Assembly: GCF_006345805.1 (NCBI RefSeq)
Contig: NW_021835834.1
Location: 1 to 38,578 of the forward strand
Direction: 5' to 3'
DNA length: 38,578 nucleotides
Source of the DNA: Octopus sinensis
Taxonomy: Eukaryota
A model generated the notes under the pieces. That model did no database searches. It was not told the DNA's origin and saw nothing but the letters and a program-made list of their open reading frames with translations. Numbering within the stretch: position 1 is the first letter of the stretch; the number at the start of each line of letters is the position of its first letter. Shown piece after piece: positions 1 to 37,498 of this stretch. The position numbers were made by a program, and so were the translations under genes.

Positions 1-1160
1 ATGGGAGTTTCAGAGCATCCTCCCTTCCAAAGTGGATCAGTTCGAATTTGTCTTCATTTAGTAACATGTTATTCTTTTCCGCCCATTGGACAACAGCCAG
101 TAGGTCTGACTGAAGGTTTATTCGGTCATCCACGCCATTGATGACCTTCTGGAGCTTGGAATCATCAGCGAAGGTTCTGATGTTACTGTGTTTGATGGTG
201 TCAGTAATATCATTTATGTAGATGATGAAGAGAAGTGGGCCCAACACAGTGCCTTGTGGGACACCACTGCTGACTTTGGCTGGGCTGGATTTGACTCCTT
301 CAACTACAACATGTTGGGTTCTGTTAGGCAGGAAGCACTTGATCCACTGCAGCAGCTTTCCAGTGACACCAATATTGGACAGCTTTCTCAGAAGGATCTT
401 ATGATCAACCCTGTCAAAGGCCTTGCTGAAATCAAGGTAGATGACATCAGTGTTGGAACCCTCTCCCAAGGCTCTCAAAATGTCATCAAAATGATGCAGT
501 AGCTGCGTCAGGCAATCTCTCCCATTACGGAATCCATGCTGGATGGAGTTCAGCATATTATGACTCTCAAGGAAGTGAGTCATACGTGATCTCAGCACTC
601 TCTCAAATACCTTAATGATATGAGAGGTGAGTGAGATTGGACGGTAATTCACGGCAAGCGATTTGTTTCCTTGTTTGAAAACTGGGATAACAGACTGGGA
701 TAGAAGGTCTTCTGGTATATATCCAGCATTCAGTGAGTTCCACCACAGATTGGCTAGAGGGGGTGCAAGTTGGTTTTGACACATCTTCAAGACACAAGCA
801 GGGAACCTATTGGGACCTACTGCTGAATTATGCTTCATTTCCTTTATTACTGCTAAGACATCAGGAGCGCCAAAGGTTATGTCCGATAAAGTGTATTGGG
901 GAGTAACATCACTGATACAGCCCAGATCAGTCATATCAGGATTGCTGAAAACAGAGCAATATTGTTTCTGCAATATCTCTCCCATGGTTTTGGCATTGTC
1001 TTGAAGAGTACCATTTTCATCAATCAGAGGGCCAACAGTAGAACCAGTGACTCTGTGTTTTTTGCAAATGAAAAGAACACTTTGGGATTGAGTTTGATCT
1101 TCTCAATGGCCCAGGCCTCTTCAGCTCTTCGCTGACTATTGATGATAGACATCATGTTGT
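1..1160 (-). mobile_element. CR1/L2/jockey-type non-LTR retrotransposon ORF2 fragment (reverse transcriptase), 5'-truncated, runs off the window start
   Basis: Hand translation of the minus strand gives NYRPISLTSHIIKVFER...QHGFRNGRDCLTQLL...YLDFSKAFDRVDH...SGVPQGTVLGPLLFIIYINDI...FADDSKL, the standard RT motifs. One apparent frameshift in an A-run near 1060-1070; otherwise open to position 1. Confidence 0.93.
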
Positions 1161-4534: not shown

Positions 4535-4840
4535 ATATATCACGTGATCACGTGACCGACCAGGCTATCAGATGTAGTTACACATCGCTGGTCACAATGC
4601 ATTCGCATTGTTTTAGCCTTCGAATGACGTCACCCCGCTGGCTAAGTGAGCAGGCCAACAGAAGAAAGAGTGAGAGAAAGTTGTGGCGAAAGAGTAGAGC
4701 AGGGGTCGCCACCACCCCCTGCCGGAGCCTCGTGGAGCTTTTAGGTGTTTTCGCTCAATAAACACACACAACGCCCGGTCTGGGAATCGAAACCGCGATC
4801 CTACGACCGCTGCCCTAACTACTGGGCCATTGCGCCTCTA
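4535..4840 (-). mobile_element. tRNA-derived SINE family B1 (tail ...GGTCGGTCACGTGATATA)
   Basis: Reverse complement gives GCGCAATGGCCCAGTAGTTAGGGCAGCGG...GGTTTCGATTCCC; matches the plus-strand copy at 28375-28665. Confidence 0.85.
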
Positions 4841-7023: not shown

Positions 7024-7448
7024 AGGCACAGGAGTGGCTGTGTGGTAAGTAGCTTGTTACCAACCACATGGTTCCAGGTTCAGTCCCTGCATGACACCTT
7101 GGCAAGTGTCTTCTATATCCTCGGGCCGACCAATGCCTTGTGAGTGGATTTGGTAGACGGAAACTGAAAAAGCCCGCGCGTATATATGTATATATATGTT
7201 ATATATATATGCGTGTGTGTGTGTGTGTTTGTGTGTCTATGTTGTCCCCCCTAGCATTGCTTGACAACCGATGCTGGTGTGTTTATGTCCCCATCACTTA
7301 GCAGTTCGGCAAAAGAGACCGATAGAATAAGTACTGGACTTACAAAAGAATAAGTACCGGGGTCGAATTGCTCGATTAAAGGCGGTGCTCCAGCATGGCC
7401 GCAGTCAAAATGACTGAAACAAGTAAAAGAGTAAAAGGGTAAAAGAGT
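7024..7448 (+). mobile_element. SINE family A copy
   Basis: Full head-to-tail match. Confidence 0.9.
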
Positions 7449-7449
7449 T

Positions 7450-9625
7450 ATACAAGAAAAAAAAAAGCTCGTCTCTCATGGTTTTAAAACGCTTGCCTTC
7501 TTCTTTATATCATCCACAACGTAAAACATTAATGCAAAATAGGTGACCCTCACCTCTCTTTTACTCTTTACTCTTTTACGTGTTTCAGTCATTTGACTGT
7601 GGCCATGCTGGAGCACCACCTTTTTAGTCAACCAAATCGATCCCCCCCCCCCAGGACTTATTCTTTGTAAGCCTAGTACTTATCTATCTCTCTTTTGCCG
7701 AACCGCTAGTTTACTCTTTTACTTGTTTGAGTCATTTGACTGTGGCCATGCTGGAGCACCACCTTTTTAGTCAAGCAAATCGATCCCCCCCAGGACTTAT
7801 TCTTTGTAAGCCTAGTACTTATTCCATCAGTCTCTTTTGCCGAACCGCTAAGTTTACTCTTTTACTCGTTTCAGTCATTTGACTGTGGCCATGCTGGAGC
7901 ACCACCTTTTTAGTCCAGCAAATCGATCCCCCCCAGGACTTATCTTGTAAGCCTAGTACTTATTCTATCGGTCTCTTTTGCCGAACCGCTAAGTTACGGG
8001 GACGTAAACACACAGCATCGGTTGTCAAGCGATGTTGGGGGGGACAAACACAGACACCCACACACACACATATATATTTTATACATTATATACGACGGGT
8101 TTCTTTCAGTTTCCGTCTACCAAATCCACTCACAAGGCTTTGGTCGGCCCGAGTCTATAGTAAAGACACTTGCCCAAGGTGCCACGCAGTGGGACTGAAC
8201 CCAGAACCATCTGGTTGGTAAGCAAGCTACTACCACACAGCAACTCCTGCGCTTATATATATACATATATACGACGGGTTTCTTTCAGTTTCCCTCTAAC
8301 CAATCCACTCACAAGCTTTGGTCGGCCCGAGTCATAGTAGAAACACTTGCCCAAGGTGCCACGCAGTGGACTGAACCCGAACCATGTGGTTGGTAAGCAA
8401 GCTACTTACCACACAGCAACTCCTGCGCTTATATATTATCTATCATGTTCGATTATTTGCTTTCAGATCAATCGGTAAAAAGTAACTTTTCTTTGTTGTT
8501 TTTTTTTACTGTTGTACTTCTTTCTTTCTCGGTGACCCAGCTTTTCTGTTTATTGTTGTTAACAAAGTATCTTTATACAAGAAAAAAACTCGTCTGTCAT
8601 GGTTTTAAAACGCTTGCCTTCTTTTTTATATCATCCACAACGTAAAACATTAATGCAATAGGTGACCCTCACCTCTCTTTTACTCTTTACTCTTTTACGT
8701 GTTTCAGTCATTTGACTGTGGCCATGCTGGAGCACCACCTTTTTAGTCACCAAATCGATCCCCCCCCCCCCAGGACTTATTCTTTGTAAGCCTAGTACTT
8801 ATTCTATCAGTCTCTTTTGCCGAACCGCTAAGTTTACTCTTTTACTTGTTTGAGTCATTTGACTGTGGCCATGCTGGAGCACCACCTTTTTAGTCAAGCA
8901 AATCGATCCCCCCCAGGACTTATTCTTTGTAAGCCTAGTACTTATTCCATCAGTCTCTTTTGCCGAACCGCTAAGTTTACTCTTTTACTCGTTTCAGTCA
9001 TTTGACTGTGGCCATGCTGGAGCACCACCTTTTTAGTCAAGCAAATCGATCCCCCCCAGGACTTATTCTTTGTAAGCCTAGTACTTATTCTATCGGTCTC
9101 TTTTGCCGAACCGCTAAGTTACGGGGACGTAAACACACCAGCATCGGTTGTCAAGCGATGTTGGGGGGGACAAACACAGACACCCACACACACACATATA
9201 TATATGTATACATATATATACGACGGGTTTCTTTCAGTTTCCGTCTACCAAATCCACTCACAAGGCTTTGGTCGGCCCGAGTCTATAGTAGAAGACACTT
9301 GCCCAAGGTGCCACGCAGTGGGACTGAACCCGGAACCATGTGGTTGGTAAGCAAGCTACTTACCACACAGCAACTCCTGCGCTTATATATATCTATGTTC
9401 GATTATTTGCTTTCCAGATACAATCGGTAAAAAGTACTTTTCTTTGTTGTTGTTTTTTTTACTGTTGTACTTCTTTTCTCGGTGACCCAGCTTTTCTGTT
9501 TATTGTTGTTAAACAAAGTATCTTTATACAAGAAAAAAAACTCGTCTGTCATGGTTTTAAAACGCTTGCCTTCTTTTTTATATCATCCACAACGTAAAAC
9601 ATTAATGCAAAATAGGTGACCCTGA
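7450..9625. repeat. Local tandem duplication (~1.0-1.1 kb period) of unique flank plus a minus-strand SINE A with a triplicated tail
   Basis: The block tatacaagaaaaaa...cgcttgccttc...ggtgaccct occurs at ~7450, ~8575 and ~9525; the SINE tail unit (~130-150 bp) occurs three times in each copy. Confidence 0.85.
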
Positions 9626-10759: not shown

Positions 10760-11599
10760 TGAATTTACTTCACGAATGCTTTTTAGCAATTGCCATTTGG
10801 TGCATGAGAGAGTTCGATGCAGCTGCCCTCATCTGCACCTCCTGCCGTGAAGTTGGTTCATCTGGGATACCTGACAAGAAGAGATCCAGTTTCATTTTAA
10901 AGACATCTGCATCCACCCCATGCAGGTCTCTTAGGTTCTTCGGGAGGATATTGAAGAGCTGTGGGCCTCGGAAGCCCAGGCTATCACAGTATCTTGTCCT
11001 ACATCTTGATGGCAAATTTGGAGTCCTTGGCACTATGCAGTGGCGCCCAGTTCTGGCATTTGTGTAACTCTCGATGCCAAAGTTTGGGACAAGTCCTTCT
11101 AGGATCTTCCAGATGTATATTATGGCATATCTTTCTCGCCTACACTTTAAGGAATAGAGTCTCAATCTCTTGAGTCTTTCCCAATAGCTTATATGCTGCA
11201 CAGAGGCTATCTTCTTTGTGTAGCTTTGTTGGATTGCCTCAAGTTCAGTGATTAACTTGACACTGGATGGTGACCATAGCTGAGAGCAATAGTCAAAGTG
11301 GCTTAGGACAAGTGTCCTCCAGAGGACCATCATGGTTTCCTGGTCTCTTGTTCTAAAGGTTCTAAGAATCCATCCGGTCAGCCGCCTACATCTCATTGCC
11401 AATTTAGCAACATGCACATGAAAAGTTGCATCATCACTCATGTAAATACCTAGGTCTCGCACTGATTATGCCTCTGGGATTGCAAATCCTCCGAGTCCAG
11501 TGTATTCATTGGGTATTGCATTCAGTTTTGCATGCTGATAGTATAAAGCTTGAAACTTTTCAGCATTGAACTGCATGCTATTCTTTTCAGCCCACTTAC
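10760..11599 (-). mobile_element. CR1/L2-type LINE ORF2 3' fragment (5'-truncated, one internal stop)
   Basis: ORF 10770-11462 (RDLGIYMSDD...FDYCSQLWSP...YWERLKRLRLYSL...RRERY..IYIWKIL) plus upstream [15 protein letters not shown], typical of the post-RT region of CR1-group LINEs. Confidence 0.9.
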
Positions 11600-12960: not shown

Positions 12961-14318
12961 TCTTAATGTTAATCTGATTTGGATAATGCACATACCCTTT
13001 AAATATAAACAAAATATAAATAACACAAAATATATTTTAAATGTGTCTTTATTGAAAAAATCAAAAATATATTGACATGATTTAAATGTAAATGATATGC
13101 TTTTATTTGTATTAATACACATATTTAAATACACATGATTTAAATGTAAATGATATGCTTTTATTTGTATTAATACACATTTTTTAAACACGCATACACA
13201 GAGAGAAAGCATTACATATACATTTGAAACCTGGCCTGGATTTTAGGAAAGTCTCTGGAGTTATTTATAAATTATTTTAAAGCCATTCTTTGAAAAATGG
13301 TATCACAGAAGTTTAATGAGAATCATTCAGATCTATCTATTTGTTCCGCAAATCCTGTAATAAAAGTGTAGTATTTAAAATTATAATTGAAGATATTTAT
13401 GTGAAACCAATAAGCACACACACACACAGATATGCTCCACTGACTTTGTCTCATCATAGATTTCAGAAAAACGAAAATTTCTACTAATTCCTTTCAGATT
13501 GTAATTATATCGGAATTTAATATGAAAAAATAAATCGGTGGGATACGTACTAACACAAATCCCATTTTTTGGCAGAAAATTTTGTCGCATCAAATTCCAG
13601 TATAAAAAGAATCTACACCATCTGAAGTGTATTTGTAGAAAATTTCCTTAAAAAATATAGATTTTTGTGAAAGTCATGAGGCAAGTCTTTGGAGCATTCA
13701 TGTGTAGATGTGCCTCAGGTATTGCCCCTGGGTGGTTACGATGTGTCAAGGTGCATGCATTACCTGAATATCCACAATAAATATGAGTTGTATTAAATTA
13801 TAATCACAGATATATGTGTGTATGGGGGAAGGGGTCTTTGTGTCTGTGTTTGTCTTCCCTCCCCACTACTTGACAACCGGTGTTGGTGGGTTTATGTCCC
13901 TGTAACTTAGCAGTTTCACAAAAGAGATCAATAGAATAAGTACAAGGCTTCAACAAAAAAACATTTCTTCCAGGCAGTGCCCCAGTATGGCAATAAATAC
14001 ACATCAAGTAGGAAACTGCCTGGAGCGTGATCTTTCTGAGGTGGAAACTGTGTGGAAGCCCCTGGTCTATGTGTGTGTGTGTCTTTGTGTTTGTTCCCCC
14101 CACCACATGAGCAGGGTTTTTGAAAAAATGCTGCTAAACCAAGGATGATGATGAAGGTGTATATAATATGGAAGGAATTTAGCAGAAACCAAATATGCTA
14201 CATCAAATGTGTTACATCATAAGGCACAAAAAGAAAATGACTCTCCCCAGACACAACAGAATATGTTAATGCAATCATTGAAAGTCTATAAGAAGAAAAA
14301 TAAAAAAACATAGCAGTC

Positions 14319-14919
14319 TTATGCTGTAACCGGTGGATTCTGGTTTTTCATACAAGATATCCTGCGGGTGACACGGTTCATGATAGAAATGTAAAGACGC
14401 CATTTGGGTATGATACAGAAGATTATGAGAAGGATGTTTACAAGAACAAGTACAGAAACGATGACTACGGCATGGATGGAAGCACTCCGTTGGTTACGAC
14501 GATGAGGGTTCCGGTTGATCTGAATCAACGGAACAGCCTGCTCGTGAAATTAACGTGTAAGTGGCTGAGCACTCCACAGACACGTGTACCCTTAACGTAG
14601 TTCTCGGGGATATTCAGCGTGACACAGAGAGTGACAAGGCTGGGTTCCTTTGAAATACAGGTACAACAGAAACAGGAAGTAAGAGTGAGAGAAAGTTGTG
14701 GTGAAAGAGTACAGCAGGGATCACCACCATCCCCTGCTGGAGCCTCGTGGAGCTTTAGGTGTTTTCGCTCAATAAACACTCACAACGCCTGGTCTGGGAA
14801 TCAAAACCGCAATCCTATGACCGCGAGTCCACTGCCTTAACCACTGGGCCATTGCACCTCCACGACTACGGCATAGGTGGATATGCATGTTCCTGATCCA
14901 TTAGCTTCAAACCCAGTAG
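14319..14919 (-). pseudogene. Duplicated terminal transmembrane exon (copy A), interrupted by a SINE
   Basis: Acceptor ttcatcttttgcAG at 14921-14920, phase 1. Without the SINE it reads (A)TGFEANGSGTCISTYAVVIVSVLVLVNILLIIFCIIPKWRLYISIMNRVTRRISCMKNQNPPVTA*. With the SINE it stops at 14839-14837. Confidence 0.75.
14474..14863 (-). mobile_element. tRNA-derived SINE family B2 with an 11-bp TSD
   Basis: The TSD gactacggcat is at 14463-14473 and 14864-14874; head GGTGCAATGGCCCAGTGGTTAAGGCAG...GGTTTTGATTCCC. Confidence 0.92.
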
Positions 14920-17073
14920 CTGCAAAAGATGAACAAGAAAACATATACTTTTTGTATTTAAGCAAAGATAGTAATATCAATAAGGCTGAACCCTTTTGAT
15001 CCCAACCTGCTCAAAACCACCCTTGTTTTTATTGTATGAATTCCCTGTTTTGAAGAGATCTAAAGTAAAACCTTCCATCAAGGCTTCAAATAAACTTGTG
15101 TTCCAAACACTAGCTTAGTAAGGACGAGGTTATTTCATTGAATTCTTTACTATTTCCAAAATTTATTGAAACAAAGGCAATGCATTTCAGCAGAAATATG
15201 GTAAGAAAAGGATTAACACACACAATTATCTTAAGACTATTATGTCTAACTGATTAAATGACCCCCTTCAGATCAGTCCATCATTTAGAAAGGTTACGTA
15301 GTATTAACAAGGGGGACTGACTTCTCAACACAAAAAATGGATGGTCAACAGATCAGTCCATCATTTACCAGGGGCAGCATATACATTTACCCGTTATTTA
15401 AGCATAATTAATTTCCTCGTTATTCAAACAGAAACTGAAACTTTCTTGTTTATTAAATTAGATGCAAACTCTGCATGAGGCTTCCTAACATTTTTGTGTA
15501 ATTAAATTTTGTGTATTGGTGTAATTTTTCATGCTGAATCTTAGGAGATAATTCACTTTTTCCACAAAAATATTAAAATAAGCTTCAGGGCTTTAAAGTT
15601 TGATCATTTTTACCCAGTCAGAAAACGGGATTTGGAAGCTGTCATTTTGTGCATGGCTGCACATGTTGTGAACTGTAAACAAATGAAATATTGTTGGAAT
15701 TCTGCTTTATGCATCCCATAAAACCCCTTAAGACATTTTTATTTTTATTTTTTGGAATCTTCAGAAAATTTTAGTGAATTTGCATTCTACACACAAAAAT
15801 TCATACAGTTATGCAAACACAAAACAAAATGCATGATTTGAGACCTATTTAGCTGTTATTTTTAGCACATCTGATGATCACTTCATACTGCATATGTTTT
15901 AAGCATTTGAAAACAGAGAAAAAGAACACATGGTAAGCAACTTGGCTTGTTGTTATGGAAACAAAAATTGTAGATATTGAAGTGAAAGCCAAGCAGAAAT
16001 GATCTTAGTTTTACTAATTAATTAAACGACTTCAGTCTAACTTCACAGGAATTTAGTTTACATCACAGGTAATGGTCGAGCCTGATAAGGTACGATTTTT
16101 GACAAGGATTTACGATTGTTTACACAGCAATAAGATTTTTTTTTCAACAAGTTTCTTCCTACCACTTAGTCTTTCAAATTTTCACCTGATTACTTTTAAA
16201 AAAATATAGTTCTGATGTAGTTTTGGATACTGATAATGAAAATCACAATCATTATTTCTAAAAACAAATAATAAAAAAGTTACATGCACTTAAAGTTAAG
16301 TAATTTTAGCCAATCGAAATCATCCATTGTTCACATATTGCTATTGCCATGGAGATTAACACAAACATAACTATTATGTGGTCTCTTGACTTGTTAGAAA
16401 TAGCTTTCAGAAAAAAATCACATTTTTTGGCAGAAAATTTTGTCACATCAAATTCCAGTATAAAAAGAATCTACACCATCTGAAGTGGATTTGTAGAAAA
16501 TTTCCTTAAAAAATATAGACTTTTGTGAAAGTCATTGGAGCATTCATGTGTAGATGTGCCCCAGGTATTGTCCCTGGGTGGTTACTATGTGTCATGGTGC
16601 ATGCATTACCTGAATATCCATAATAAAAATAAATTGTATTCAATTATAATCACAGACATATGTGTGTATGGGGGAAGGGGTCTTTGTGTCTGTGTTTGTC
16701 CTCCCTCCCCACTACTTGACAACAGGTGTTGGTGGGTTTATGTCCCTGTAACTTAGCAGTTTCGCAAAAGAGATCAAAAGAATAAGTACAAGGCTTCAAT
16801 AACAAAAAATTTCTTCCAGGCAGTGCCCCAGTATGGCCATAAATTGGGAGTGAAATGTGTTGATAACAATTAGCAACAAGTAGGAAACTACCTGGAGGGT
16901 GATCTTTCTGAGGTGGAAACTGTGTGGAAGCCCCTGGTCTATGTGTGTGTGTGTCTTTGTGTTTGTACCCCCCACCACTTGAGCAGGGTTTTTGAAAAGA
17001 TGAGGCTAAACCAATGATGATGATGAAGGTGTATATAATATGGAAGGAATTTAGTAGAAACCAAATATGCTAA

Positions 17074-17300
17074 TGACTTGACTTGACAGCATTCACCCGG
17101 GGTGGGCTGAGCTGGCTTCATTCATCCTCAATGCTGCATCTCTCACAAACGCTGACCAGACCTGGCGATTTGAGGCTCACGACCATGTGATCTCCAACCA
17201 CTCCTTATTCCAGCAGCAAATGCCATAGATGTGGGGGCCTAGGTTGGGTTCCAGATCAGCCTTGACTGTCATCAGCCAGGTTTTTCGTTGTCCAATACCC
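17074..17300 (-). mobile_element. RTE-clade LINE 3' end fragment with a (CAAGT)n tail, present only in copy B
   Basis: Minus strand reads GQRKTWLMTVKADLEP...NRQVWSAFVRDA and ends ...TGTCAAGTCAAGTCA. Confidence 0.7.
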
Positions 17301-17386
17301 TTCAAATATTCCTCATGTATATCGCAAAATATGCTAAAGCAATCATTGAAATTCTATAAGAAAAAAAATCACAAAACATAGCATTC

Positions 17387-17586
17387 TTACGCTGTAGCCG
17401 GTGGATTCTTGTATCTCTTGCGAGATATCCACTTGTTGACACGGTTCCTGATCCAAATGAAAGGTTGGCATTTGAATATGATACAGAAGATTATGAAGAT
17501 GGCTACAAGACCAAGTACAGAAATGACGACATAGATATGTATGCTGGTTCTTGATCCATTAGCTTCCAAACCTTTTGTTTCTTCAT
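17387..17586 (-). CDS. Terminal exon of a single-pass receptor-like gene: stalk, transmembrane helix and ~28-aa basic cytoplasmic tail
   Basis: Acceptor ttcatcttttgcAG (17588-17587), phase 1; (D)EETKGLEANGSRTSIHIYVVISVLGLVAIFIIFCIIFKCQPFIWIRNRVNKWISRKRYKNPPATA*. Hydrophobic run of ~22 aa followed by K/R-rich residues. Confidence 0.8.
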
Positions 17587-18289
17587 CTGCAAAAGATGAA
17601 CAAGAAAACATATACTTTTTGTTTTTAAGCAAAGATAGTAATATCAATAAGGCTGAACCCTTTTGATCCCAACCTGCTCAAAACCACCCTTGTTTTTATT
17701 GTACGAATTCCCTGTTTTAAAGAGATCTAAAGTAAAACCTTCCATCAAGGCTTCAAATAAACTTGTGTTCCAAACACTAGCTTAGTAAGGACGAGGTTAT
17801 TTCATTGAATTCTTTACTATTTCCAAAATTTATTGAAACAAAGGCAATGCATTTCAACAGAAATATGGTAAGAAAAGGATTAACACACACAATTATCTTA
17901 AGACTATTATGTCTAACTGATTAAATGACCCCCTTCAGATCAGTCCATCATTTAGAAAGGTTACGTAGCATTAACAAGGGGGACTGACTTTTCAACACAA
18001 AAGTGGATGGTCAACAGATGAGTCCATCATTTACCAGGGGCAGCATATACATTTACCCGTTATTTAAGCATAATTAATTTCCTCGTTATTGAAATAGAAA
18101 CTGAAACTTTCTTATTTATTAAATTAGATGCAAACTCTGCACGAGGCTTCCTAACATTCTTGTGTAATTAAATTTGGTGGCTCAAACAAAATGTTAACAA
18201 ATTCTAGCATTGAAAATGGCAGGTGTAAAGAATTGTGAGGTGAGATAATATTGAGGGTTACGGGGAAGGCAAAAGGGGGTCATTTCAAA

Positions 18290-21651: not shown

Positions 21652-21900
21652 CTTTCATCACCAAAGTATAACTTTCTGAGCAGAAATAGTAGTCACAAAA
21701 ACTCCAAGTCAAATCTTGTTCAGTGACATTATGGATCAAAAGAGTTGAGCTGTTACCCTTGTAATGAACTTCATAATTTCCTTTATTCTCACAAGTATCT
21801 ACACATTGAAGATAATTAAACTCGTTAACCCACAAAACTGGTGTTCCAATCAAGCTTGATTCGATATGAATAGTAGCATTTTTTCCTAATACAACTGGTG
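21652..21900 (-). CDS. Extracellular domain exon 2 (249 nt, phase 1-1), probable atypical Ig-like domain
   Basis: Acceptor tttttatttcAG, donor GTAAGG. PVVLGKNATIHIESSLIGTPVLWVNEFNYLQCVDTCENKGNYEVHYKGNSSTLLIHNVTEQDLTWSFCDYYFCSESYTLVMK; sequons NAT, NSS, NVT; homologous to 27199-27444. Confidence 0.85.
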
Positions 21901-23770: not shown

Positions 23771-24099
23771 ATAAATACAGCAGTGAATTTAAGTTCCGGT
23801 AAGATTTCACCAAGGTTCCGTTCTCAGTACCTTCCTATTCATCAGTGTGCAGGCACATGGCCTAGTGGCTAGAGTTGCGGACACACAGTCGAGGGATCAC
23901 GGGTTCGAATCTCAGACTGGGCGATGTATGTGCTTATGAGCAAAACACCTAAGCTCCACGTTGCTCTGGCAGAAGGTAATGGCAAACTGATCAGAAAAGG
24001 AAATAAAAAAGTAACCAAAAACTCTGAGTTAAGGGAAAGAAACAGAAGACAGAATTGGAAAGAGTGTCTAGCGTAAAAGGAGTTTGTAAATCCATTTAC

Positions 24100-24138
24100 C
24101 GTTTTGGGTCATCTTATAAATTTCTATTCTTGTCGAAT
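24100..24138 (-). CDS. 39-nt linker micro-exon (phase 1-1)
   Basis: catcttttacAG|ATTCGACAAGAATAGAAATTTATAAGATGACCCAAAACG|GTAAAT gives (N)STRIEIYKMTQN(A) and joins both domain exons in frame. Confidence 0.75.
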
Positions 24139-24249
24139 CTGTAAAAGATGAAAACAAAAAAAGATGACAACAAAGAAAAAAGATGAAAACAAAAAACGAT
24201 GTAAACAAAAATTTTTGAGTTTCAGATTTTACATTCAATCAACAGGATT

Positions 24250-27165
24250 CATCATCATCATCATCATCGTTTAACGTCCGTTTTCCATGCTAGCATGGGT
24301 TGGACGGTTCAACTGGGGTCTGGGAAGCCAGGAGACTGCACCAGGCTCTAATCTGATCTGGCAGTGTTTCTACAGCTGGATGCCCTTCCTAATGCCAACC
24401 ACTCCATGAGTGTAGTGGGTGCTTTTTACGTGCCACCAGCACAGGTGCCAGGCGAGGCTGGCAATGGCCACGATCGGATTGGTGCTTTTTATGTGCCACC
24501 GGCACAGGTGCCAGGCGAGGCTGGCAATGGCCATGATCGGATTGGTGCTTTTTATGTGCCACCGGCACAGGTGCCAGGCGAGGCTAGCAATAGCCATGAT
24601 CGGATTGGTGCTTTTTACGTGCCACCGGCACAGGTGCCAGGCGAGGCTAGCAATGGCCATGATCGGATTGGTGCTTTTTACGTGCCACCGGCACAGGTGC
24701 CAGGTGAGGCTGGCAATGGCCATGATCGGATTGGTGCTTTTTACGTGCCACCAGCACAGGTGCCAGGCGAGGCTGGCAATGGCCACGATCGGATTGGTGC
24801 TTTTTATGTGCCACCGGCACAGGTGCCAGGCGAGGCTGGCAATGGCCATGATCGGATTGGTGCTTTTTATGTGCCACCGGCACAGGTGCCAGGCGAGGCT
24901 AGCAATAGCCATGATCGGATTGGTGCTTTTTACGTGCCGCCGGCACAGGTGCCAGGCGAGGCTAGCAATGGCCATGATCGGATTGGTGCTTTTTACGTGC
25001 CACCAACACAGGTGCCAGGCGAGGCTGGCAATGGCCATGATCGGATTGGTGCTTTTTATGTGCCACCGGCACAGGTGCCAGGCGAGGCTAGCAATAGCCA
25101 TGATCGGATTGGTGCTTTTTACGTGCCACCGGCACAGGTGCCAGGCGAGGCTAGCAATGGCCATGATCGGATTGGTGCTTTTTACGTGCCACCGGCACAG
25201 GTGCCAGGTGAGGCTGGCAATGGCCATGATCGGATTGGTGCTTTTTACGTGCCACCAACACAGGTGCCAGGTGAGGCTGGCAATGGCCATGATCGGATTG
25301 GTGCTTTTTACGTGCCACCAACACAGGTGCCAGGTGAGGCTGGCAATGGCCATGATCGGATTGGTGCTTTTACGTGCCACCGGCACAGGTGCCAGGTGAG
25401 GCTGGCAATGGCCATGATCGGATTGGTGCTTTTTACGTGCCACCAACACAGGTGCCAGGTGAGGCTGGCAATGGCCATGATCGGATTGGTGCTTTTTACG
25501 TGCCACCAACACAGGTGCCAGGTGAGGCTGGCAATGGCCATGATCGGATTGGTGCTTTTTACGTGTCACCAACACAGGTGCCAGGTGAGGCTGGCAATGG
25601 CCATGATCGGATTGGTGCTTTTTACGTGCCACCGGCACAGGTGCCAGGTGAGGCTGGCAATGGCCATGATCGGATTGGTGCTTTTTACGTGCCACCAACA
25701 CAGGTGCCAGGTGAGGCTGGCAATGGCCATGATCGGATTGGTGCTTTTTACGTGCCACCACACAGGTGCCAGGTGAGGCTGGCAATGGCCATGATCGGAT
25801 TGTGCTTTTTACGTGTCACCAACACAGGTGCCGGTGAGGCTGGCAATGGCCATGATCGGATTGGTGCTTTTTACGTGCCACCAACACAGGTGCCAGGTGA
25901 GGCTGGCAATGGCCATGATCGGATTGGTGCTTTTTACGTGTCCACACACAGGTGCCAGGTGAGGCTGGCAATGGCCATGATCGGATTGGTGCTTTTTACG
26001 TGCCACCAACACAGGTGTCAGGTGAGGCTGGCAATGGCCATGATCGGATTGGTGCTTTTTACGTGCCACCAACACAGGTGTCAGGTGAGGCTGGCAATGG
26101 CCATGATCTGATTGGTGCTTTTTACGTGCCACCGGCACAGGTGTCAGGTGAGGCTGGCAATGGCCATGATCGGATTGGTGCTTTTTACGTGCCACCAACA
26201 CAGGTGCCAGGTGAGGCTGGCAATGGCCATGATCGGATTGGTGCTTTTTACGTGCCACCAACACAGGTGCCAGGTGAGGCTGGCAATGGCCATGATCGGA
26301 TTGGTGCTTTTTACGTGTCACCAACACAGGTGTCAGGTGAGGCTGGCAATGGCCATGATCGGATTGGTGCTTTTTACGTGCCACCAACACAGGTGCCAGG
26401 TGAGGCTGGCAATGGCCATGATCGGATTGGTGCTTTTTACGTTCCACCAACACAGGTGCCAGGTGAGGCTGGCAATGGCCATGATCGGATTGGTGCTTTT
26501 TACGTGCCACCAACACAGGTGCCAGGTGAGGCTGGCAATGGCCATGATCGGATTGGTGCTTTTTACGTGTCACCAACACAGGTGTCAGGTGAGGCTGGCA
26601 ATGGCCATGATCGGATTGGTGCTTTTTACGTGCCACCGGCACAGGTGCCAGGTGAGGCTGGCAATGGCCATGATCGGATTGGTGCTTTTTACGTGCCACC
26701 AACACAGGTGCCAGGTGAGGCTGGCAATGGCCATGATCGGATTGGTGCTTTTTACGTGCCACCAACACAGGTGCCAGGTGAGGCTGGCAATGGCCATGAT
26801 TGGATTGGTGCTTTTTACGTGCCACCAACACAGGTGCCAGGCGAGGCTGGCAATGGCCACGATCAGATGGTGCTTTTTAGGTGCCACCAGCACAGGTGCC
26901 AGGCGAGGCTGGCAATGGCCATGATTGGATTGGTGCTTTTTACGTGCCACCAACACAGGTGCCAGGCGAGGCTGGCAATGGCCACGATCAGATGGTGCTT
27001 TTTAGGTGCCACCAGCACAGGTGCCAGGCGAGGCTGGCAATGGCCATGATTGGATTGGTGCTTTTTACATGCTACCAACACGGAGGCCAGCTGACCCGGC
27101 GCTGGCAACGACCACGTTCTGATGGTCCTCTTACGTGCCACCGGCACTGGTATCACAACTACAAT
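24250..27165 (-). mobile_element. (GAT)n-tailed retro-element (RTE-like 3' end) hosting the 63-bp array
   Basis: (CAT)n-CGTTTAACGTCCGTTTTCCATGCTAGCATGGGTTGGA...GGATGCCCTTCC matches 21016-21260 and the reverse-oriented copy at 34760-34970. Confidence 0.75.
24418..27080. repeat. 63-bp GC-rich minisatellite, about 42 units
   Basis: Unit GGTGCTTTTTACGTGCCACC(G/A)(G/A)CACAGGTGCCAGG(T/C)GAGGCTGGCAATGGCCATGATCGGATT; 21-aa periodicity in the ORF track. Confidence 0.97.
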
Positions 27166-27198: not shown

Positions 27199-27444
27199 TG
27201 TTTATTTTCAGATGAAATATCCCTCCTTCGACGTTGTCGTCTAGAAATTTCCAAGTCAAACATTTGTTAGTTATTCTCCTCATCCAAAGAGAAGACTTGT
27301 TGCCACTCTGACTCACTTGAAATTCAGTACCTTTGGCACATGATCTATCGCACTCGTATCTCTTATTGCCACAATACCACACAGCCGGTCTCTTCATGTT
27401 TTCAATTTCAATAGAGAGGGTGGCACTTCCTCCGAGTATTTCCC
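27199..27444 (-). CDS. Extracellular domain exon 1 (246 nt, phase 1-1), probable atypical Ig-like domain
   Basis: Acceptor ttctttatttcAG, donor GTAAGG. (G)EILGGSATLSIEIENMKRPAVWYCGNKRYECDRSCAKGTEFQVSQSGNKSSLWMRRITNKCLTWKFLDDNVEGGIFHLKIN. Confidence 0.85.
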
Positions 27445-28374: not shown

Positions 28375-28665
28375 GTGGAGGCGCAATGGCCTAGTGGTTA
28401 GGGCAGCGGACTCGCGGTCGCAGGATTGCGGTTTCGATTCCCAGACCGGGCGTTGTATGTGTTTATTGAGCGAAAACACCCAAAAAGCTCCACGAGGCTC
28501 CGGCAGGGGGTGGTGATCTCTGCTGTACTCTTTCACCACTCTTTCTTCTGTCGGCCTGCTCGCTTAGCCAGCGGGGTGGCGTCATTCGAAGGCTAAAACA
28601 ATGTGAACGCATTGTGACCAGCGATGTGTAACAACATCTGATGGTCTGGTCGGTCACGTGATATA
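28375..28665 (+). mobile_element. SINE family B1 copy
   Basis: GGAGGCGCAATGGCCTAGTGGTTAGGGCAGCGG...GGTTTCGATTCCC; reverse complement of 4535-4840. Confidence 0.88.
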
Positions 28666-29431: not shown

Positions 29432-29868
29432 AATATTTTTAGGAATTATATAACAAAATTGTTAAAATATTTTGTGTACTGTAAAAATATAACCCATTAA
29501 TTGTACATAAATTTTAACAACAAAATCCTATGTGGACCCCCAACAGCCATATTGACCCCGGTTAAAAACCACTATTCTAGTGGATTCCCCGATGAGTGAT
29601 TCTGGCTCATTAGCCTTTATCAATGGGAAACTCCAGAGAAAGATAAACCTGAGCAGATTCAAAGCTGTTGTTTTATCTAAAGAGCAGTCACTATCAGTGA
29701 CTGAGTTGTGCTAGTGAACTGCCTGGTCGGAATAAATGTTTTAAGAAATCAAAAAACACAAATGAAACAGTGAATAAAATTTATGAGTTGAGTTAAAGAA
29801 ATAGAAGAGAGAATTGAAAAAGTTGTGTCTAGTTTAGAAGGCGAAAGGGGATAAGGTAATCCACTTAC

Positions 29869-29925
29869 CACTTTGGGTGAAATTTTTAACTCCTTCTGAT
29901 CTCAAATCGTTTGCACTTGCCAAAT
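29869..29925 (-). CDS. 57-nt linker exon, copy 1 (phase 1-1)
   Basis: catcttccacAG|ATTTGG...CAAAGTG|GTAAGT gives (D)LASANDLRSEGVKNFTQS(G); in frame with exon 27444. Confidence 0.72.
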
Positions 29926-31067
29926 CTGTGGAAGATGAATACAAGGACTTTTGAATTTCAGATTTTACATTCGATCAACAAGATTGTTTCCTATTTCTGT
30001 TACAATAATTAAATAGTAATTAACACGAGTAGATCTAATTACACATTATATACTGTACCACTGGTATGTTACTCCATACTCCTATTAGCAATAATCTACA
30101 TAAACCTAACTTATACACTTAATCTAAGAAGCTCACACTTATGAACCTTTCAGAAAATATACGCGTGATGAGTTTTTCGTACTTACCAGCACTAAGTTAT
30201 TTAAATGCACCCGAGCACTAAACATACTAGTCTAGCACACTACCCCCACCATAGCCTCTATGTCACGCTGGTGAGACCCATATATTTTATAATTATTGGT
30301 GCTACCTTGTTCATGGCTACTGTTTCTAGGATCCATGTTTCCAGGATTATTATTATTATTATTATTGTTATTTGTGCCCTAAGAGTGAAACTGCCAATCA
30401 TAAGTAATCCCTCTTTAGTTAAAATATGTTTGTGACATATTTTAACTTCTAAAGGCAAATTTACTGCATTTACCAAAGAGAAGGATTTCTCACTGATGGT
30501 AAAAGGTGTGAAAACACCATATCTGCCCAGTGCTTACCTATAACACAATGCAACCCTTTTGATTTCTATTTCACTCAGGTGGACCCTTATAACCATTTCA
30601 TGTTTTAAAAAATCCTATTTTTATAATTAAATATTATTAGGAATTGTATTTAAAAAACTGATTAAAAATTTGGTGTACTGTAAAGCTAAAACCAATTAAT
30701 TGTACATAAATTTTAACAACAAAATCCTATATGGACCCCCAACAGCCATACTGACCCCGGTTAAAAACCACTATTCTAGTGGATTCCCCGATGAGTGATT
30801 CTGGCTCATTGGCCTTTATCAATGGGAAACTCCAGAGAAAGATAAACCTGAGCAGAGTCAAAGCTGTTGTTTTATCTAAAGAGCAGTCACTATCAGTGAC
30901 TGAGTTGTGCTAGTGAACTGCCTGGTCGGAATAAATGTTTTAAGAAATCAAAAAACACAAATGAAACAGTGACTAAAACCTATGAGTTAAGTAAAAGAAA
31001 TAGAAGAGAGATTTGAAAAAGTTGTGTCTAGTTTAGAAGGCGAAAGGGGATAAGGTAATCCACTTAC

Positions 31068-31124
31068 CACTTTGGGTGAAATTTTTAACTCCTTCTGATC
31101 TCAAATCATTTGGACTTGCCAAAT
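31068..31124 (-). CDS. 57-nt linker exon, copy 2 (phase 1-1)
   Basis: catcgtccacAG...GTAAGT intact; (D)LASPNDLRSEGVKNFTQS. Confidence 0.62.
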
Positions 31125-31469
31125 CTGTGGACGATGAATACAAGGACTTTTGAATTTCAGATTTTACATTCGATCAACAAGATTGTTTCCTATTTCTGTT
31201 ACGATAATTAAATAGTAATTAACACGAGTAGATCTAATTACACATTATATACTGTACCACTGGTATGTTACTCCATACTCCTATTAGCAATAATCTACAT
31301 AAACCTAACTTATACACTTAATCTAAGAAGCTCACACTTATGAACCTTTCAGAAAATATACGCGTGATGAGTTTTTCGTACTTACCAGCACTACGTTATT
31401 TAAATGCACCCGAGCACTAAACATACTAGTCTAGCACACTACCCCCACCATAGCCTCTATGTCACGCTG

Positions 31470-31960
31470 GGATTCATGCCTCTTCTCCTTATCTCCTCAA
31501 AGACATACATCATCTCGAAAGAGTCCAGAAGCCGGCTACCCGCATGGTTCTTGGTCTCAAGCATTTGTCTTATGAAGAAACGCTGAAGACACTTGACCTT
31601 TATTCTCTAGAAAAACGACGACGCCATGGTGATCTCATTCTCGCTCACAACATCATAAGCGGAAAGTGTAACCTCTCGAAAGAGCTGTTCTTCACTCCGG
31701 CTCCAGAGCGTCGGCTGCAGGGTCACTCCGAAAAGCTCTATCTACGATGATTTCATCTCAATCAAAGGAGAGGAGCTTTCTCCGTCCGGGTTGCGGATCT
31801 GTGGAATAAGCTGCCGGACGAGATAGTGAAGATGCCGACGACCGCTCGGTTCAAAGTCTCTCTTGACCAGAAAAGGCCTGAACTCTTTGCATGAACACCA
31901 CCCTGTACATAACTCCATGTCCCCCTACATGGCCTTGCGCTTTTTGAACCAATAAAAATT
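31470..31960 (+). mobile_element. CR1-type LINE 3' end fragment
   Basis: VLGLKHLSYEETLKTLDLYSLEKRRRHGDLI...GHSEKL...FSVRVADLWNKLP, with one stop. Confidence 0.88.
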
Positions 31961-32977: not shown

Positions 32978-33254
32978 AGCTGTTAGTAAATAATATATTT
33001 AAAGTGTTAATGGCGAATGAAGTCAAGGAGTGGAAAAGAATGAGATGAATCGTAGCTTCGCTTCTCAAGATTGTTTGGAGGAGGAATGGGATGTTAGCAG
33101 AAAAAAAGCAAAAATAAAGCAAAAACGGAAGAAAACTTACAAAAGCACCATGAAAACAAAAAGATCAACTTTAAAGGGTCCATCTGAAAAATAATTTTGG
33201 AAAATATGCAAAAAATTGTTAGCATGCGAGACAAAATGTTTCGTGGTATATCGA

Positions 33255-34983: not shown

Positions 34984-35755
34984 CTAGCAGTATCGCCGGC
35001 TTTGCTCGGGTTTGTAAGGGAAATAACTATATAAGCATTTTTAGAGAGTTATAGCCAAAAAATAGCCAAAAAATGCATTGAAAATGGAAAAAAAATGATG
35101 GTAAATTTTTTTTAAATTGTTGACTCATTGTAGACATTTTTAGAGAGTTACTTCCCTTATATAATAGCGAAGAAAATGCATTAAAATGGGAAAAAAATTA
35201 CGGTAAATTTTTTTTTAAATCGTAGACTCATCGTAGTCGCGCGCTAATACCCAGAAGGGCTCGATATGAATCACGACTATAAGATACCCGCTTTTGGTTA
35301 AACTGCACCGCAAAATGTGGGAGTAGTTAGGAATCTAAATCGTAGGAGACAGACACACAACTTCACTTTTATATATAACTAGCAGTATCGCCCGGCGTTG
35401 CTCGGGTTTGTAAGGGAAATAACTATAAACCATTTTTAGAGAGTTATAGCCAAAAATTGCATTAAAAATGGAAAAAAAATGATGGTAAATTTTTTTTAAA
35501 TCGTTGAATCATTGTAGACATTTTTAGAGAGTTACTTCCCTTATATAATAGCGAAGAAAATGCATTAAAAATGGAAAAAAAAATTATGGTAAATTTTTTT
35601 TAAATCGTAGATGCGCGCTAATACCCAGAAGGGCTCAATATGAATCACGACTATAAGATACCCGGTTTTGGTTAAACTGCACTGCAAAATGTGGGAGTAG
35701 TTAGGAATCTAAATCGTAGGAGACAGACACACAACTTCACTTTTATATATAAAGA
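34984..35755 (-). mobile_element. Two head-to-tail non-autonomous Helitrons (34984-35378 and 35379-35755)
   Basis: Each starts on the plus strand with CTAG plus CGCCCGGCGTTGCTCGGG-like hairpin; reverse complement of 18290-18683. Confidence 0.85.
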
Positions 35756-36081: not shown

Positions 36082-37498
36082 GGCGCAGGAGTGGCTGTGT
36101 GGTAAGTAGCTTGTCTACCAACCACATGGTTCCGGGTTCAGTCCACTGCGTGGCACCTTGGGCATGTGTCTTCTACTATAGCCTCGGGCCGACCAAAGCC
36201 TTGTGAGTGGATTTGGTAGACGGAAACTGAAAGAAGCCTGTCGCATATACGAGGGACGTTCAATAAGTAATGCCTCTGACCCACTTGCAGTTGTTTGATC
36301 TAGCTGAAATTTTGCATGTGCAATCATTTATATGGTCGCCCCCTTCTGCCATTGATGAGGCATCTGTCTGTCAAGTTGAGGCTGCCATTTTGGAAGATCG
36401 ACGCATAATTATTTGCCAAATAGCCCATGAGGTCAAGTTTAGTACCGGGTCTGTGGAAACTATCATTCATGACCATTTGCATATGCAAAAGGTGTCTGCC
36501 AGATGGATTCCCAGGTTGCTCACGCCTTTCCAGAAGCAAGAACGCGTCGAGTGCTCGAGGGTGAATTTGGAGATGTGCCAAGAAGATGAGTCAAAATTTT
36601 TCAAAAGACTGATTACACAGGATGAAACCTGGGTCCAGAGACCAAAGCCCAGTCAATGCAGTGGAAGCACCGTGACTCACCCCTCCAAAGAAGGCAAGGG
36701 TGCAGCCCTCTGCTGGCAAGGTCATGCTCACAGTCTTCTGGGACCAGGACGGAGTAGTGATGACAGATTTCCTGGCAAAGGGTACCACAATTGCAGGAGC
36801 CTATTATGCTTCACTTTTGAGGAAATTAAGAGAAGTTATCAAAATCAAGAGGCGGGGCAAGATCAGCAAAGGCATCCTCCTCCTGCAGGACAACGCTCCG
36901 GTCCACAACTCGCTTGTCGCCAGATCAGAAGCACAGGCGTATGGCTATGAACTCCTCCCCATCCCCCCTACTTTCCTGACCTTGCACCCTCTGATTTTCA
37001 CCTCTTCCAGCCATGAAGTTGTTTTTGAAAGGAAAGCGTTTCCCAGATGATGCAGCCTTGATTTCTGAAGTCACGTTGAGGTTGGAGGAACAAGCTGGGG
37101 TATTCTACAAAAACGGTCTCCAGAGCCGCATCAAACGATGGGAGAAATGCGTAACTCTGGGTGGTTCCTATGTAGAAAAAGACTAATAACTGTGCCAAGT
37201 TTCGTTGCTCTACTGCTATGGGAAGTGGGTCAGGGGCATTACTTATTGAACGCCCCTCGTATGTATATATATATAAGTGTGTGTATGTGTGTGTGTCTGT
37301 GTTTGTCCCCCTTGCATTGCTTGACAACCGATGCTGGTGTGTTTACGTCCCCGTCACTTAGTGGTTCGGCAAAAAGAGACCGATAGAATAAGTACTGGGC
37401 TTACAAAGAATAGTCCCGGGGTCGATTTGCTCGACTAAAGGGCGGTGCTCCAGCATGGCCGCAGTCAAATGACTGAAACAAGTAAAAGAGTAAAGAGT
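36082..37498 (+). mobile_element. SINE family A copy split by a mariner insertion
   Basis: 5' half at 36082-36247, 3' half at 37262-37498. Confidence 0.88.
36250..37259 (+). mobile_element. Mariner (DD34D) DNA transposon, internally deleted and frameshifted
   Basis: TIRs CGAGGGACGTTCAATAAGTAATGCC / GGCATTACTTATTGAACGCCCCTCG with TA on both sides; peptides WIPRLL, ITQDETWV, KVMLTVFWD, LLQDNAP, and across a frameshift PDLAPSDF. Confidence 0.95.

Follow-up and report, generated by a model that had tools for sequence, protein, structure and literature searches.

Why should two neighbouring copies of an exon differ so widely when the introns leading into them are almost the same? The question is raised by a stretch of 38,578 nucleotides from Octopus sinensis (positions 1 to 38,578 of contig NW_021835834.1, RefSeq assembly GCF_006345805.1; referred to as the window), the minus strand of which carries LOC115231405, the locus whose product is the O. 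sinensis RefSeq protein XP_036355964.1 (P0003); it was matched by a search with both joined domain exons from the window and is listed as an 'uncharacterized protein'. Judged by its sequence, the product is a type I membrane protein with two immunoglobulin (Ig)-like domains. An earlier note on this DNA had described two duplicated terminal exons that differ about ten times more than their adjoining intron, and had offered positive selection or, instead, gene conversion and unequal crossover as the cause. These exons lie side by side in a tandem array of membrane-anchor and tail exon cassettes, and the answer that we favour, with some reserve, is diversifying selection on the translated tail combined with unequal crossover and short-tract gene conversion among the cassettes. 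Both parts of the earlier alternative found support, and it is the either/or between them that falls away, since the two seem to act together.

The contrast itself is large. In a blastn alignment of the introns before the two acceptors (14920-15513 against 17587-18179), 97.5% of 594 columns are identical, with 14 mismatches and one gap; by substitutions 14 of 593 sites differ (2.4%), in agreement with the hand count of about 14. The exons, aligned by codon after removal of an insertion from one of them, differ at 42 of 189 aligned nucleotides (22%) and in 28 of 63 codons, so that exon divergence stands far above that of the adjoining intron (Fisher p=7.6e-17) and also above that of the 3' flank (p=2e-11). 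The flank (13557-14200 against 16415-17072) is 89.7% identical by blastn with gaps and 4.9% different by substitutions only, and the exon with the start of the 3' untranslated region (UTR) (14257-14465 against 17325-17530) is 81% identical. In windows of 60 nt, the two copies remain 92-100% identical as far as the acceptor AG, and then fall to 75-80% over the exon. Within the last 29 sense codons 23 of 87 nucleotides differ; 16 residues are replaced, and a single difference (GCA/GCG) is cleanly silent, all within one or two of the approximately 21, 15 and one that had been counted. The accompanying statement that almost all changes alter amino acids is numerically true but lies near chance expectation, 77% of sites being non-synonymous. 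The differences are spread evenly over the three codon positions (14, 16, 12), and the Nei-Gojobori (NG86) estimates are dN 0.27-0.28 and dS 0.15-0.21, an omega (dN/dS) of 1.3-1.8 with a bootstrap interval that includes 1.

Each cassette opens with about 0.6-1.5 kb of intron, continues with a 200-nt phase-1 exon and closes with about 0.7-1 kb of 3' flank (Table 1). The exon codes for a juxtamembrane segment, a transmembrane (TM) helix and a 27-residue tail, and its stop codon overlaps a GT donor. The intact exon of the window is labelled T2 (cassette 2), the exon split by a short interspersed nuclear element (SINE)-like insertion T1 (cassette 1), and the exon of the orthologous locus of O. vulgaris (L001) TL; a hydrophobic stretch of about 22 residues is present in all three. 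The phase-1 acceptor ...TTTTGCAG is common to all cassettes, and the tandem exons share phase and equivalent splice sites. The acceptor-proximal intron segment I of cassette 2 is 98.8% identical to L001 and 96-98% identical to cassette introns at two related loci, L004 of O. sinensis and L007, which in O. vulgaris lies 41 kb from L001. The distal intron segment S is an integral part of the repeat unit and not a junk spacer, because the L004 array, with a period of 2457 bp, contains it: S is contiguous with segments I and F in each 2.46-kb unit there (window 14920-15963 and 15956-17013 both match), and it is found in L005 (O. sinensis) and L007 as well. The intron segment was also considered as a mobile element and rejected as such, since it has only two copies in the window and keeps the same register with the exon throughout. 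An old SINE-like repeat, with other members of its family elsewhere in the window, lies in flank F2 of cassette 2. An insertion of about 250 bp in the 3' UTR and flank F2 (approximately 17073-17324), found in cassette 2 but absent from cassette 1 and L001, is probably another repeat fragment.

The insertion in T1 is flanked by an 11-nt target-site duplication, ATGCCGTAGTC (14864-14874 equal to 14463-14473), and brings a stop 8 codons into the insert. It is missing at the homologous site in cassette 2 and in L001 and present in L002, the O. sinensis chromosome scaffold, which has the same two cassettes. Partial copies of the element lie at 28375-28546 (89%) and 4657-4810 (91%) of the window. 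A tRNA-like head was judged by eye alone and remains an impression, because ARAGORN and Rfam searches of the insert found no tRNA-like gene or family. With the insertion removed, T1 has the same open frame and the same stop as T2, and every indel between the two is a multiple of 3.

The use of the cassettes can be read from the gene models. The translation of T2 agrees with XP_036355964.1 up to ...PPATA, after which the protein goes on YWV, its C-terminus being ...PPATAYWV; the GT that overlaps the T2 stop must therefore be spliced to the T1 acceptor in this model. T1 is then read out of frame for three codons, YWV, to a stop TGA at 14907-14909, and it has AT where T2 has its GT donor. According to the model, T2 would supply the anchor and T1 would act as an out-of-frame last exon in this genome; the SINE-disrupted T1 and the intact T2 are thus not the equivalent terminal exons for which they had been taken. 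The overlap of stop and donor, together with splicing from cassette to cassette, occurs also in the gene models of three other loci, consecutive cassettes being joined in P0003, P0032, P0010 and P0071. The first-cassette stop overlaps a GT donor at about 2085-2095 in L004, 17882-17892 in L005 and 23610-23618 in L001, in the form GC/GTAAGA or GAA/GTATAA, and the separately deposited O. vulgaris annotation lists unspliced and spliced isoforms alike. The same bases would thereby either terminate the protein or take the stop out.

Copy number varies among the related loci, which carry one, two or at least three cassettes. L004 has at least three, and L005 and L007 hold further arrays; L003 ends about 500 bp before the cassettes, so that no exon could be taken from it. 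At the orthologous loci O. sinensis has two cassettes and O. vulgaris one. Units are thus added to the arrays and lost from them, with unequal crossover as the presumable cause. L001, about 97% identical to the window overall, combines an intron like that of cassette 2 (1.2% different) with a flank like that of cassette 1 (1.3%) and an exon, TL, that is 21-24% different from both T1 and T2. A simple chimera by non-allelic homologous recombination (5' part of T2, 3' part of T1) was rejected for TL, in which the two patterns are interspersed and 18-23 states are its own. In L006 (O. bimaculoides, 15331-15585) the last 257 intron bases are 84% identical and the exon about 60%, the remaining cassette being not alignable, which hints at constraint on the acceptor-proximal cassette intron.

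Two peculiarities of the later cassettes may be recorded here. Second cassettes have tandem repeats of 24-27 bases at the 5' end (L004 4510-4600, L005 18975-19135, L007 about 35345-35505), which in the frame set upstream give a Q/D-rich tail (EAADQQMDQ...), and the TM-frame open reading frame (ORF) behind them is still open. In L004 the second and third cassettes (L004b, L004c) are identical to each other and have lost the canonical stop (TAA to ACA; 4768-4790, 7225-7247), the TM-frame ORF extending 12 codons beyond it.

Selection was assessed across five cassettes, namely T2, T1, TL, L004a and L004b, with the last 452 bases of the intron as reference. Pairwise, the introns differ by 1.6-3.3% and the exons by 18-29%, and states private to one cassette occupy 6-10% of exon sites, against 0-1.3% of intron sites. 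The amino acid varies at 41 of 56 codon columns, 20 of which hold at least three residues among the five sequences, and variable sites are most numerous at second codon positions (32 of 56, against 22 at first and 18 at third). The residues that are conserved make up the helix's hydrophobic core and, in the tail, a periodic pattern of I/V. One-ratio maximum-likelihood estimation (GY94 M0) gave an omega of 2.42, significantly above 1 (likelihood-ratio statistic 9.66 against omega=1, p=0.0019), and pairwise NG86 values ranged from 0.9 to 4.1, several bootstrap intervals excluding 1. In the dN/dS comparison proposed in the earlier note, the set lies significantly above 1 and the focal pair does not. 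A downstream flank comparison of L004a with L005a (40%) reflects misalignment from structural differences and was left unused.

Could positive selection in place account for everything? In that case the duplication would be very recent (about 2% neutral divergence), and selection would have fixed point substitutions at about 10% of sites in each exon lineage, in the manner described for venom-gland isozyme genes, with neither conversion nor old lineages. Such a history is compatible with an omega above 1 and the excess at second codon positions, with the predominance of private changes, with introns that show no clustering by species and with exon changes that are rich in transversions (21 transitions, 26 transversions, all classes present), unlike those of the intron. 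TL and L007a, the closest pair of first cassettes, have a dS of 0.038, close to intron divergence, and a dN of 0.114. Other findings speak against it. Silent divergence on the five-cassette tree is about five times that of the intron (exon tree dS 0.32, intron tree length about 0.05), and for the focal pair synonymous sites exceed the intron with a Fisher p=0.0009. T2 and TL, moreover, are not sisters: TL is nearest to L007a, the first cassette of a gene next to it in O. vulgaris (8.2%, against 21% to its positional orthologue T2), and shares with L007a a 24-nt deletion at the acceptor. About 36 substitutions in 181 nt during 1.2% of intron change would need 7-15 times the neutral rate over the whole exon, and the anchor exon of another paralogue is identical in amino acids between the same two species.

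Exchange between cassettes has left traces of its own. L007b and L005b differ at 11 sites, five of them within one 6-nt window (permutation P=0.0002), and four of these five carry the state of T1 (W_c1) and L005a, and this block, shared by non-sister cassettes and significantly clustered, is a short converted tract. A VNEW/VTRR block of 6-16 nt is common to non-sister cassettes, and mutually incompatible site patterns are many in both intron and exon. In view of these observations acceleration purely in place is possible but unlikely.

Under the favoured explanation, the first cassette after the last Ig-like exon would, as in the gene models, supply anchor and tail, and where the stop/donor is spliced the next cassette would be read in the other frame and contribute a short C-terminal extension and 3' UTR. 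Unequal crossover presumably alters the number of cassettes, and short tracts are exchanged by conversion, within a locus and with neighbouring paralogues. Such exchange could hold the non-coding parts at about 97-99% identity, while diversifying selection on the protein would keep the translated exon different and drive it further apart, new exon variants arising from point substitution and the reshuffling of blocks among cassettes. The outcome is a sharp 200-nt peak of divergence, running from the acceptor AG to the first tens of bases past the stop. The property selected might be the interaction specificity of TM segment and tail, such as pairing with a partner or adaptor, sorting, or escape from an antagonist.

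Several points weigh against this explanation. The omega of the focal pair is not significantly above 1, and the test on the five cassettes assumes a single tree, which recombination violates. Exon differences are mostly private to one cassette and star-like, a pattern that fits independent change in place as well as exchange. Few silent sites are available: codons that are fully conserved have 2 variable sites for 12.7 synonymous ones, against 4.7% in the intron (p=0.13). A permutation test of the pairwise homoplasy index (PHI) kind for clustering of incompatible exon sites was not significant. Introns of O. sinensis are at least as distant from one another (1.8-3.3%) as introns of different species are (1.2-2.7%); the introns do not cluster by species, and ongoing homogenisation is therefore not shown, since recent duplication could give the same low divergence. 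Splicing from cassette to cassette is read from the gene models of two annotations, the orthology of L004, L005 and L007 was assumed from layout only, and the sample comprises two species and nine cassette copies, eight of them distinct.

A local mutational hot spot in the exon, whether by hypermutation or by repair- or transcription-associated mutagenesis, would dispense with selection on the protein altogether. Silent and replacement sites are indeed both raised over the intron, and multi-nucleotide differences occur within codons. Against it stand the second cassettes, which are out of frame in the models: they are of the same sequence type and have no excess over their flanks, L004b and L005b differing by 3.3% in the exon and 3.7-4.3% in the flanks. 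Between first-cassette exons of these loci the difference is 16-22%. It is translation, and not the type of sequence, that selection follows. The paralogue anchor exon unchanged between species, the excess at second codon positions and the preserved reading frame add to the case, and the balance of transitions and transversions carries no deaminase-like bias, on which ground hypermutation of the deaminase or editing type was rejected. A hot spot is accordingly very improbable.

An artefact of assembly, in which two haplotypes or paralogues had been joined in tandem, or the collapse or over-polishing of a repeat had produced a falsely near-identical intron beside two real exon alleles, finds some support in the assembly itself. 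The window, a small scaffold left unplaced, repeats a locus of the chromosome, and window 14070-18180 and L002 18100-22200 differ by a single substitution in about 4.1 kb, exactly across the cassettes, with 2.3-2.9% on both sides; identity by descent, conversion between the copies or a polishing effect are possible causes. In O. vulgaris, moreover, the locus has a single cassette. Nevertheless, two sequences that were assembled separately agree in the layout and in the 14 intron differences, the units are joined by segment S just as they are in L004, L005 and L007, which include an independent chromosome-level assembly of O. vulgaris, the cassette region has no runs of N, and gene models splice T2 to T1. 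We hold an artefact to be highly improbable. Within the O. sinensis assembly the locus has at least three copies (on the window scaffold, on the chromosome scaffold and on VCDQ01005282.1), 98-99% identical and each under a different LOC number, and they are probably uncollapsed haplotigs; RefSeq lists the gene under two LOC numbers, one on the unplaced scaffold and one as a partial chromosome model.

Relaxed constraint, that is, the decay of a dead, SINE-disrupted T1, has in its favour that both O. sinensis copies have an interrupted T1 and that the RefSeq model does not use the TM frame of this exon, but it can hardly be credited, as neutral decay cannot exceed the 2.4% of the adjoining intron, the T1 frame is intact apart from the insertion with indels in frame only, and the same excess separates intact translated cassettes (T2 and TL, L004a and L005a, L007a and others).

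With considerable doubt, a functional reading may be added to the diversifying selection and exchange favoured above. The cassette arrays could be a working diversification module of cephalopod-specific Ig-like surface receptors, yielding for each animal and species a changing repertoire of receptors that have their ectodomain in common and differ in signalling, sorting or adaptor pairing, with an arms race or self/non-self discrimination as the driver. Its ingredients would be the choice among near-identical acceptors, the stop/donor, the rapid turnover of the TM/tail exon and helices some of which carry a polar N or EN. If this were true, invertebrates would have in these arrays a parallel to paired or variable immune-type receptors, with the anchor, and not the binding site, as the part that is diversified.

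The remainder of the gene is listed in Table 1 with the cassettes. The product has a hydrophobic N-terminus, two Ig-like domains of about 85 residues each (25% identical to each other) on phase 1-1 exons, and a single TM helix with a short tail. Its ectodomain differs from that of L001 at 4 of 230 residues.

Table 1. Features of LOC115231405 and its anchor cassettes in the window, in the order of the gene
Feature	Position	Strand	Basis or remark
Signal-peptide exon, start (MDPLKLIFLFSWCF)	33142-33183	-	Sequence match with P0001
Two duplicated mini-exons DLAS[A/P]NDLRSEGVKNFTQS, about 29870-29935 and about 31069-31134, in a 1.2-kb tandem duplication	29864-31143	-	
Exon, first Ig-like domain, constitutive, phase 1-1	27199-27444	-	Exon phases from sequence
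Micro-exon (STRIEIYKMTQN), approximate limits	24098-24145	-	tblastn with P0001
Exon, second Ig-like domain, constitutive, phase 1-1; donor feeds the cassette acceptors	21652-21900	-	Weak Pfam I-set match
Cassette 2, acceptor-proximal intron segment I, ending ...TTCATCTTTTGCAG	17587-18179	-	97.5% identical to 14920-15513
Exon T2, phase 1, intact; DEETKGLEANGSRTSIHIY-VVISVLGLVAIFIIFCIIF-KCQPFIWIRNRVNKWISRKRYKNPPATA-stop (juxtamembrane segment, TM helix, 27-residue tail)	17387-17586	-	ORF and translation
T2 stop TAA (17387-17389), overlapping GT donor (GC/GTAAGA)	17387-17392	-	
Cassette 2, 3' UTR and flank F2	16415-17386	-	blastn against 13557-14200, 89.7%; three-way alignment
Segment S, distal intron before cassette 1	15514-16414	-	Unique within the window
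Cassette 1, acceptor-proximal intron segment I'	14920-15513	-	
Exon T1, whole, split by 390-bp SINE	14319-14919	-	
Exon T1, 5' part; TM frame ATGFEANGSGTCISTYAVV	14864-14919	-	
SINE-like retroposon, 390 bp, inserted in T1, gene orientation	14474-14863	-	
Exon T1, 3' part; IVSVLVLVNILLIIFCIIPKWRLYISIMNRVTRRISCMKNQNPPVTA-stop, stop 14319-14321	14319-14462	-	
Cassette 1, 3' UTR and flank F1	13557-14318	-	1.3% different from the flank of the single O. vulgaris cassette

In domain searches, Pfam I-set (PF07679) matched P0001 with E=0.0015 and 19 bits, under the cut-off of 23.7 bits, and a Pfam search of the single domain exons gave no match; the paralogues P0053, P0055 and P0057 carry precomputed PF07679 matches, and distant phmmer matches fell in the Ig repeats of an obscurin-like protein. 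A profile search with eight aligned tail peptides returned P0032 as the sole match. The single-sequence AlphaFold model of P0001 (mean predicted local distance difference test score, pLDDT, 41) was too poor to use; a helix stands at 240-263 in it. Among about 34 representative relatives, the sources looked up were octopods (O. sinensis, O. vulgaris, O. bimaculoides and Argonauta), distant matches in giant vertebrate proteins being the exception, and many relatives are clustered on one chromosome. The family thus appears, from the relatives looked up, to be octopod-specific, and it is uncharacterised.

LOC115231405 contains a second exon duplication. Window 29432-30271 and 30630-31470 form the 1.2-kb tandem duplication, about 97% identical, with a 22-residue mini-exon in each copy; the RefSeq protein includes both mini-exons, L001 and L002 have the duplication as well, and the mini-exons are conserved, unlike the cassette exons. 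The intron that separates the first Ig-like exon from the micro-exon contains a 63-bp satellite of about 42 copies and 55% G+C (24418-27081), the array length of which varies between the window, L001 and L002. A 143-bp tandem repeat with three copies at each of 7567-7995 and 8686-9120 is expanded to about 15 copies in O. vulgaris (L001 30192-32313). Long ORFs at 10770-11462 (minus strand), 36270-37050 (plus) and 188-502 (plus) resemble, by eye, mobile-element remnants of reverse-transcriptase-like and transposase-like kind, and none of them had a Pfam match.

To our knowledge, it is seldom that exons outpace their introns in divergence, and the recorded examples are secreted toxins, reproductive proteins and extracellular binding domains. 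In LOC115231405 the conserved and the variable parts are swapped, the ectodomain being nearly unchanged between sister octopus species and the anchor with its short tail hypervariable. A formal parallel is the peak of divergence that marks the target of selection when duplicates undergo gene conversion, which is the expected signature in the work of Innan and the model of Teshima and Innan and is exemplified by exon 5 of the human red/green opsins (PMC3924837). The octopus locus shares with it the tandem duplicates, the near-identical introns, the short divergent coding target, the sharp exon-centred peak and the exchange between copies. It departs from it in that the peak spans the whole 200-nt exon, with 41 of 56 codons variable and not two key residues, and in that there are more than two copies at several loci with change of copy number, within-species homogenisation of the introns being not demonstrated.

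The genes of venom-gland isozymes, of the phospholipase A2 (PLA2) type, combine conserved introns with accelerated exons and equal rates at the three codon positions (PMC7285919). The earlier note had drawn a comparison with venom toxin genes, and as to pattern it is apt: introns and UTRs are far more conserved than exons, KA is close to or greater than KS, substitution rates at the three codon positions are similar, and the genes form a tandem multigene family. The octopus product, by contrast, is a membrane-anchored, receptor-like Ig-like protein and not a secreted toxin, and its hypervariable part is TM helix and cytoplasmic tail beside a conserved ectodomain (4/230); since it keeps its TM anchor, the resemblance to the venom PLA2 type is one of pattern, not of membership. 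Replacement of short exon segments as blocks between isoforms was described in a 2008 study, according to PMC7285919. The VNEW/VTRR block in non-sister octopus cassettes is similar to the replacement so described, and donor-like sequences are visible in neighbouring cassettes, so that ordinary short-tract gene conversion would suffice for such blocks.

In major histocompatibility complex (MHC) genes, both class I and class II, divergent peptide-binding exons stand among homogenised introns. The octopus exons are likewise older or more divergent than the adjoining introns, with diversifying selection and conversion as the shared ingredients, but in the MHC it is alleles that are contrasted and an extracellular binding domain that is affected, whereas here the contrast lies between tandem cassettes and concerns anchor and tail. 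Drosophila Dscam1 has two alternative TM exons, 17.1 and 17.2, and the clustered protocadherins form arrays of alternative exons. Tandem exons of the same phase, near-identical acceptors, alternative TM segments and a receptor of Ig-superfamily type are all features held in common with these; unlike at Dscam1 exon 17, the octopus gene models have serial use and not mutually exclusive choice, and each cassette has a stop of its own. Conversion limited to particular regions is reported for protocadherin clusters (PMC1852091).

If the pattern does reflect selection on anchor and tail, it points to a signalling or host-pathogen interface in cephalopods, and the cassette units of about 2.5 kb offer a compact natural system for gene conversion and diversifying selection on tandem exons. 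Set beside the known systems, the peak of divergence and the accelerated exon are familiar, and the points of difference are the TM/tail target, the conserved ectodomain, the variable array with its stop/donor and the setting in an uncharacterised octopod family.

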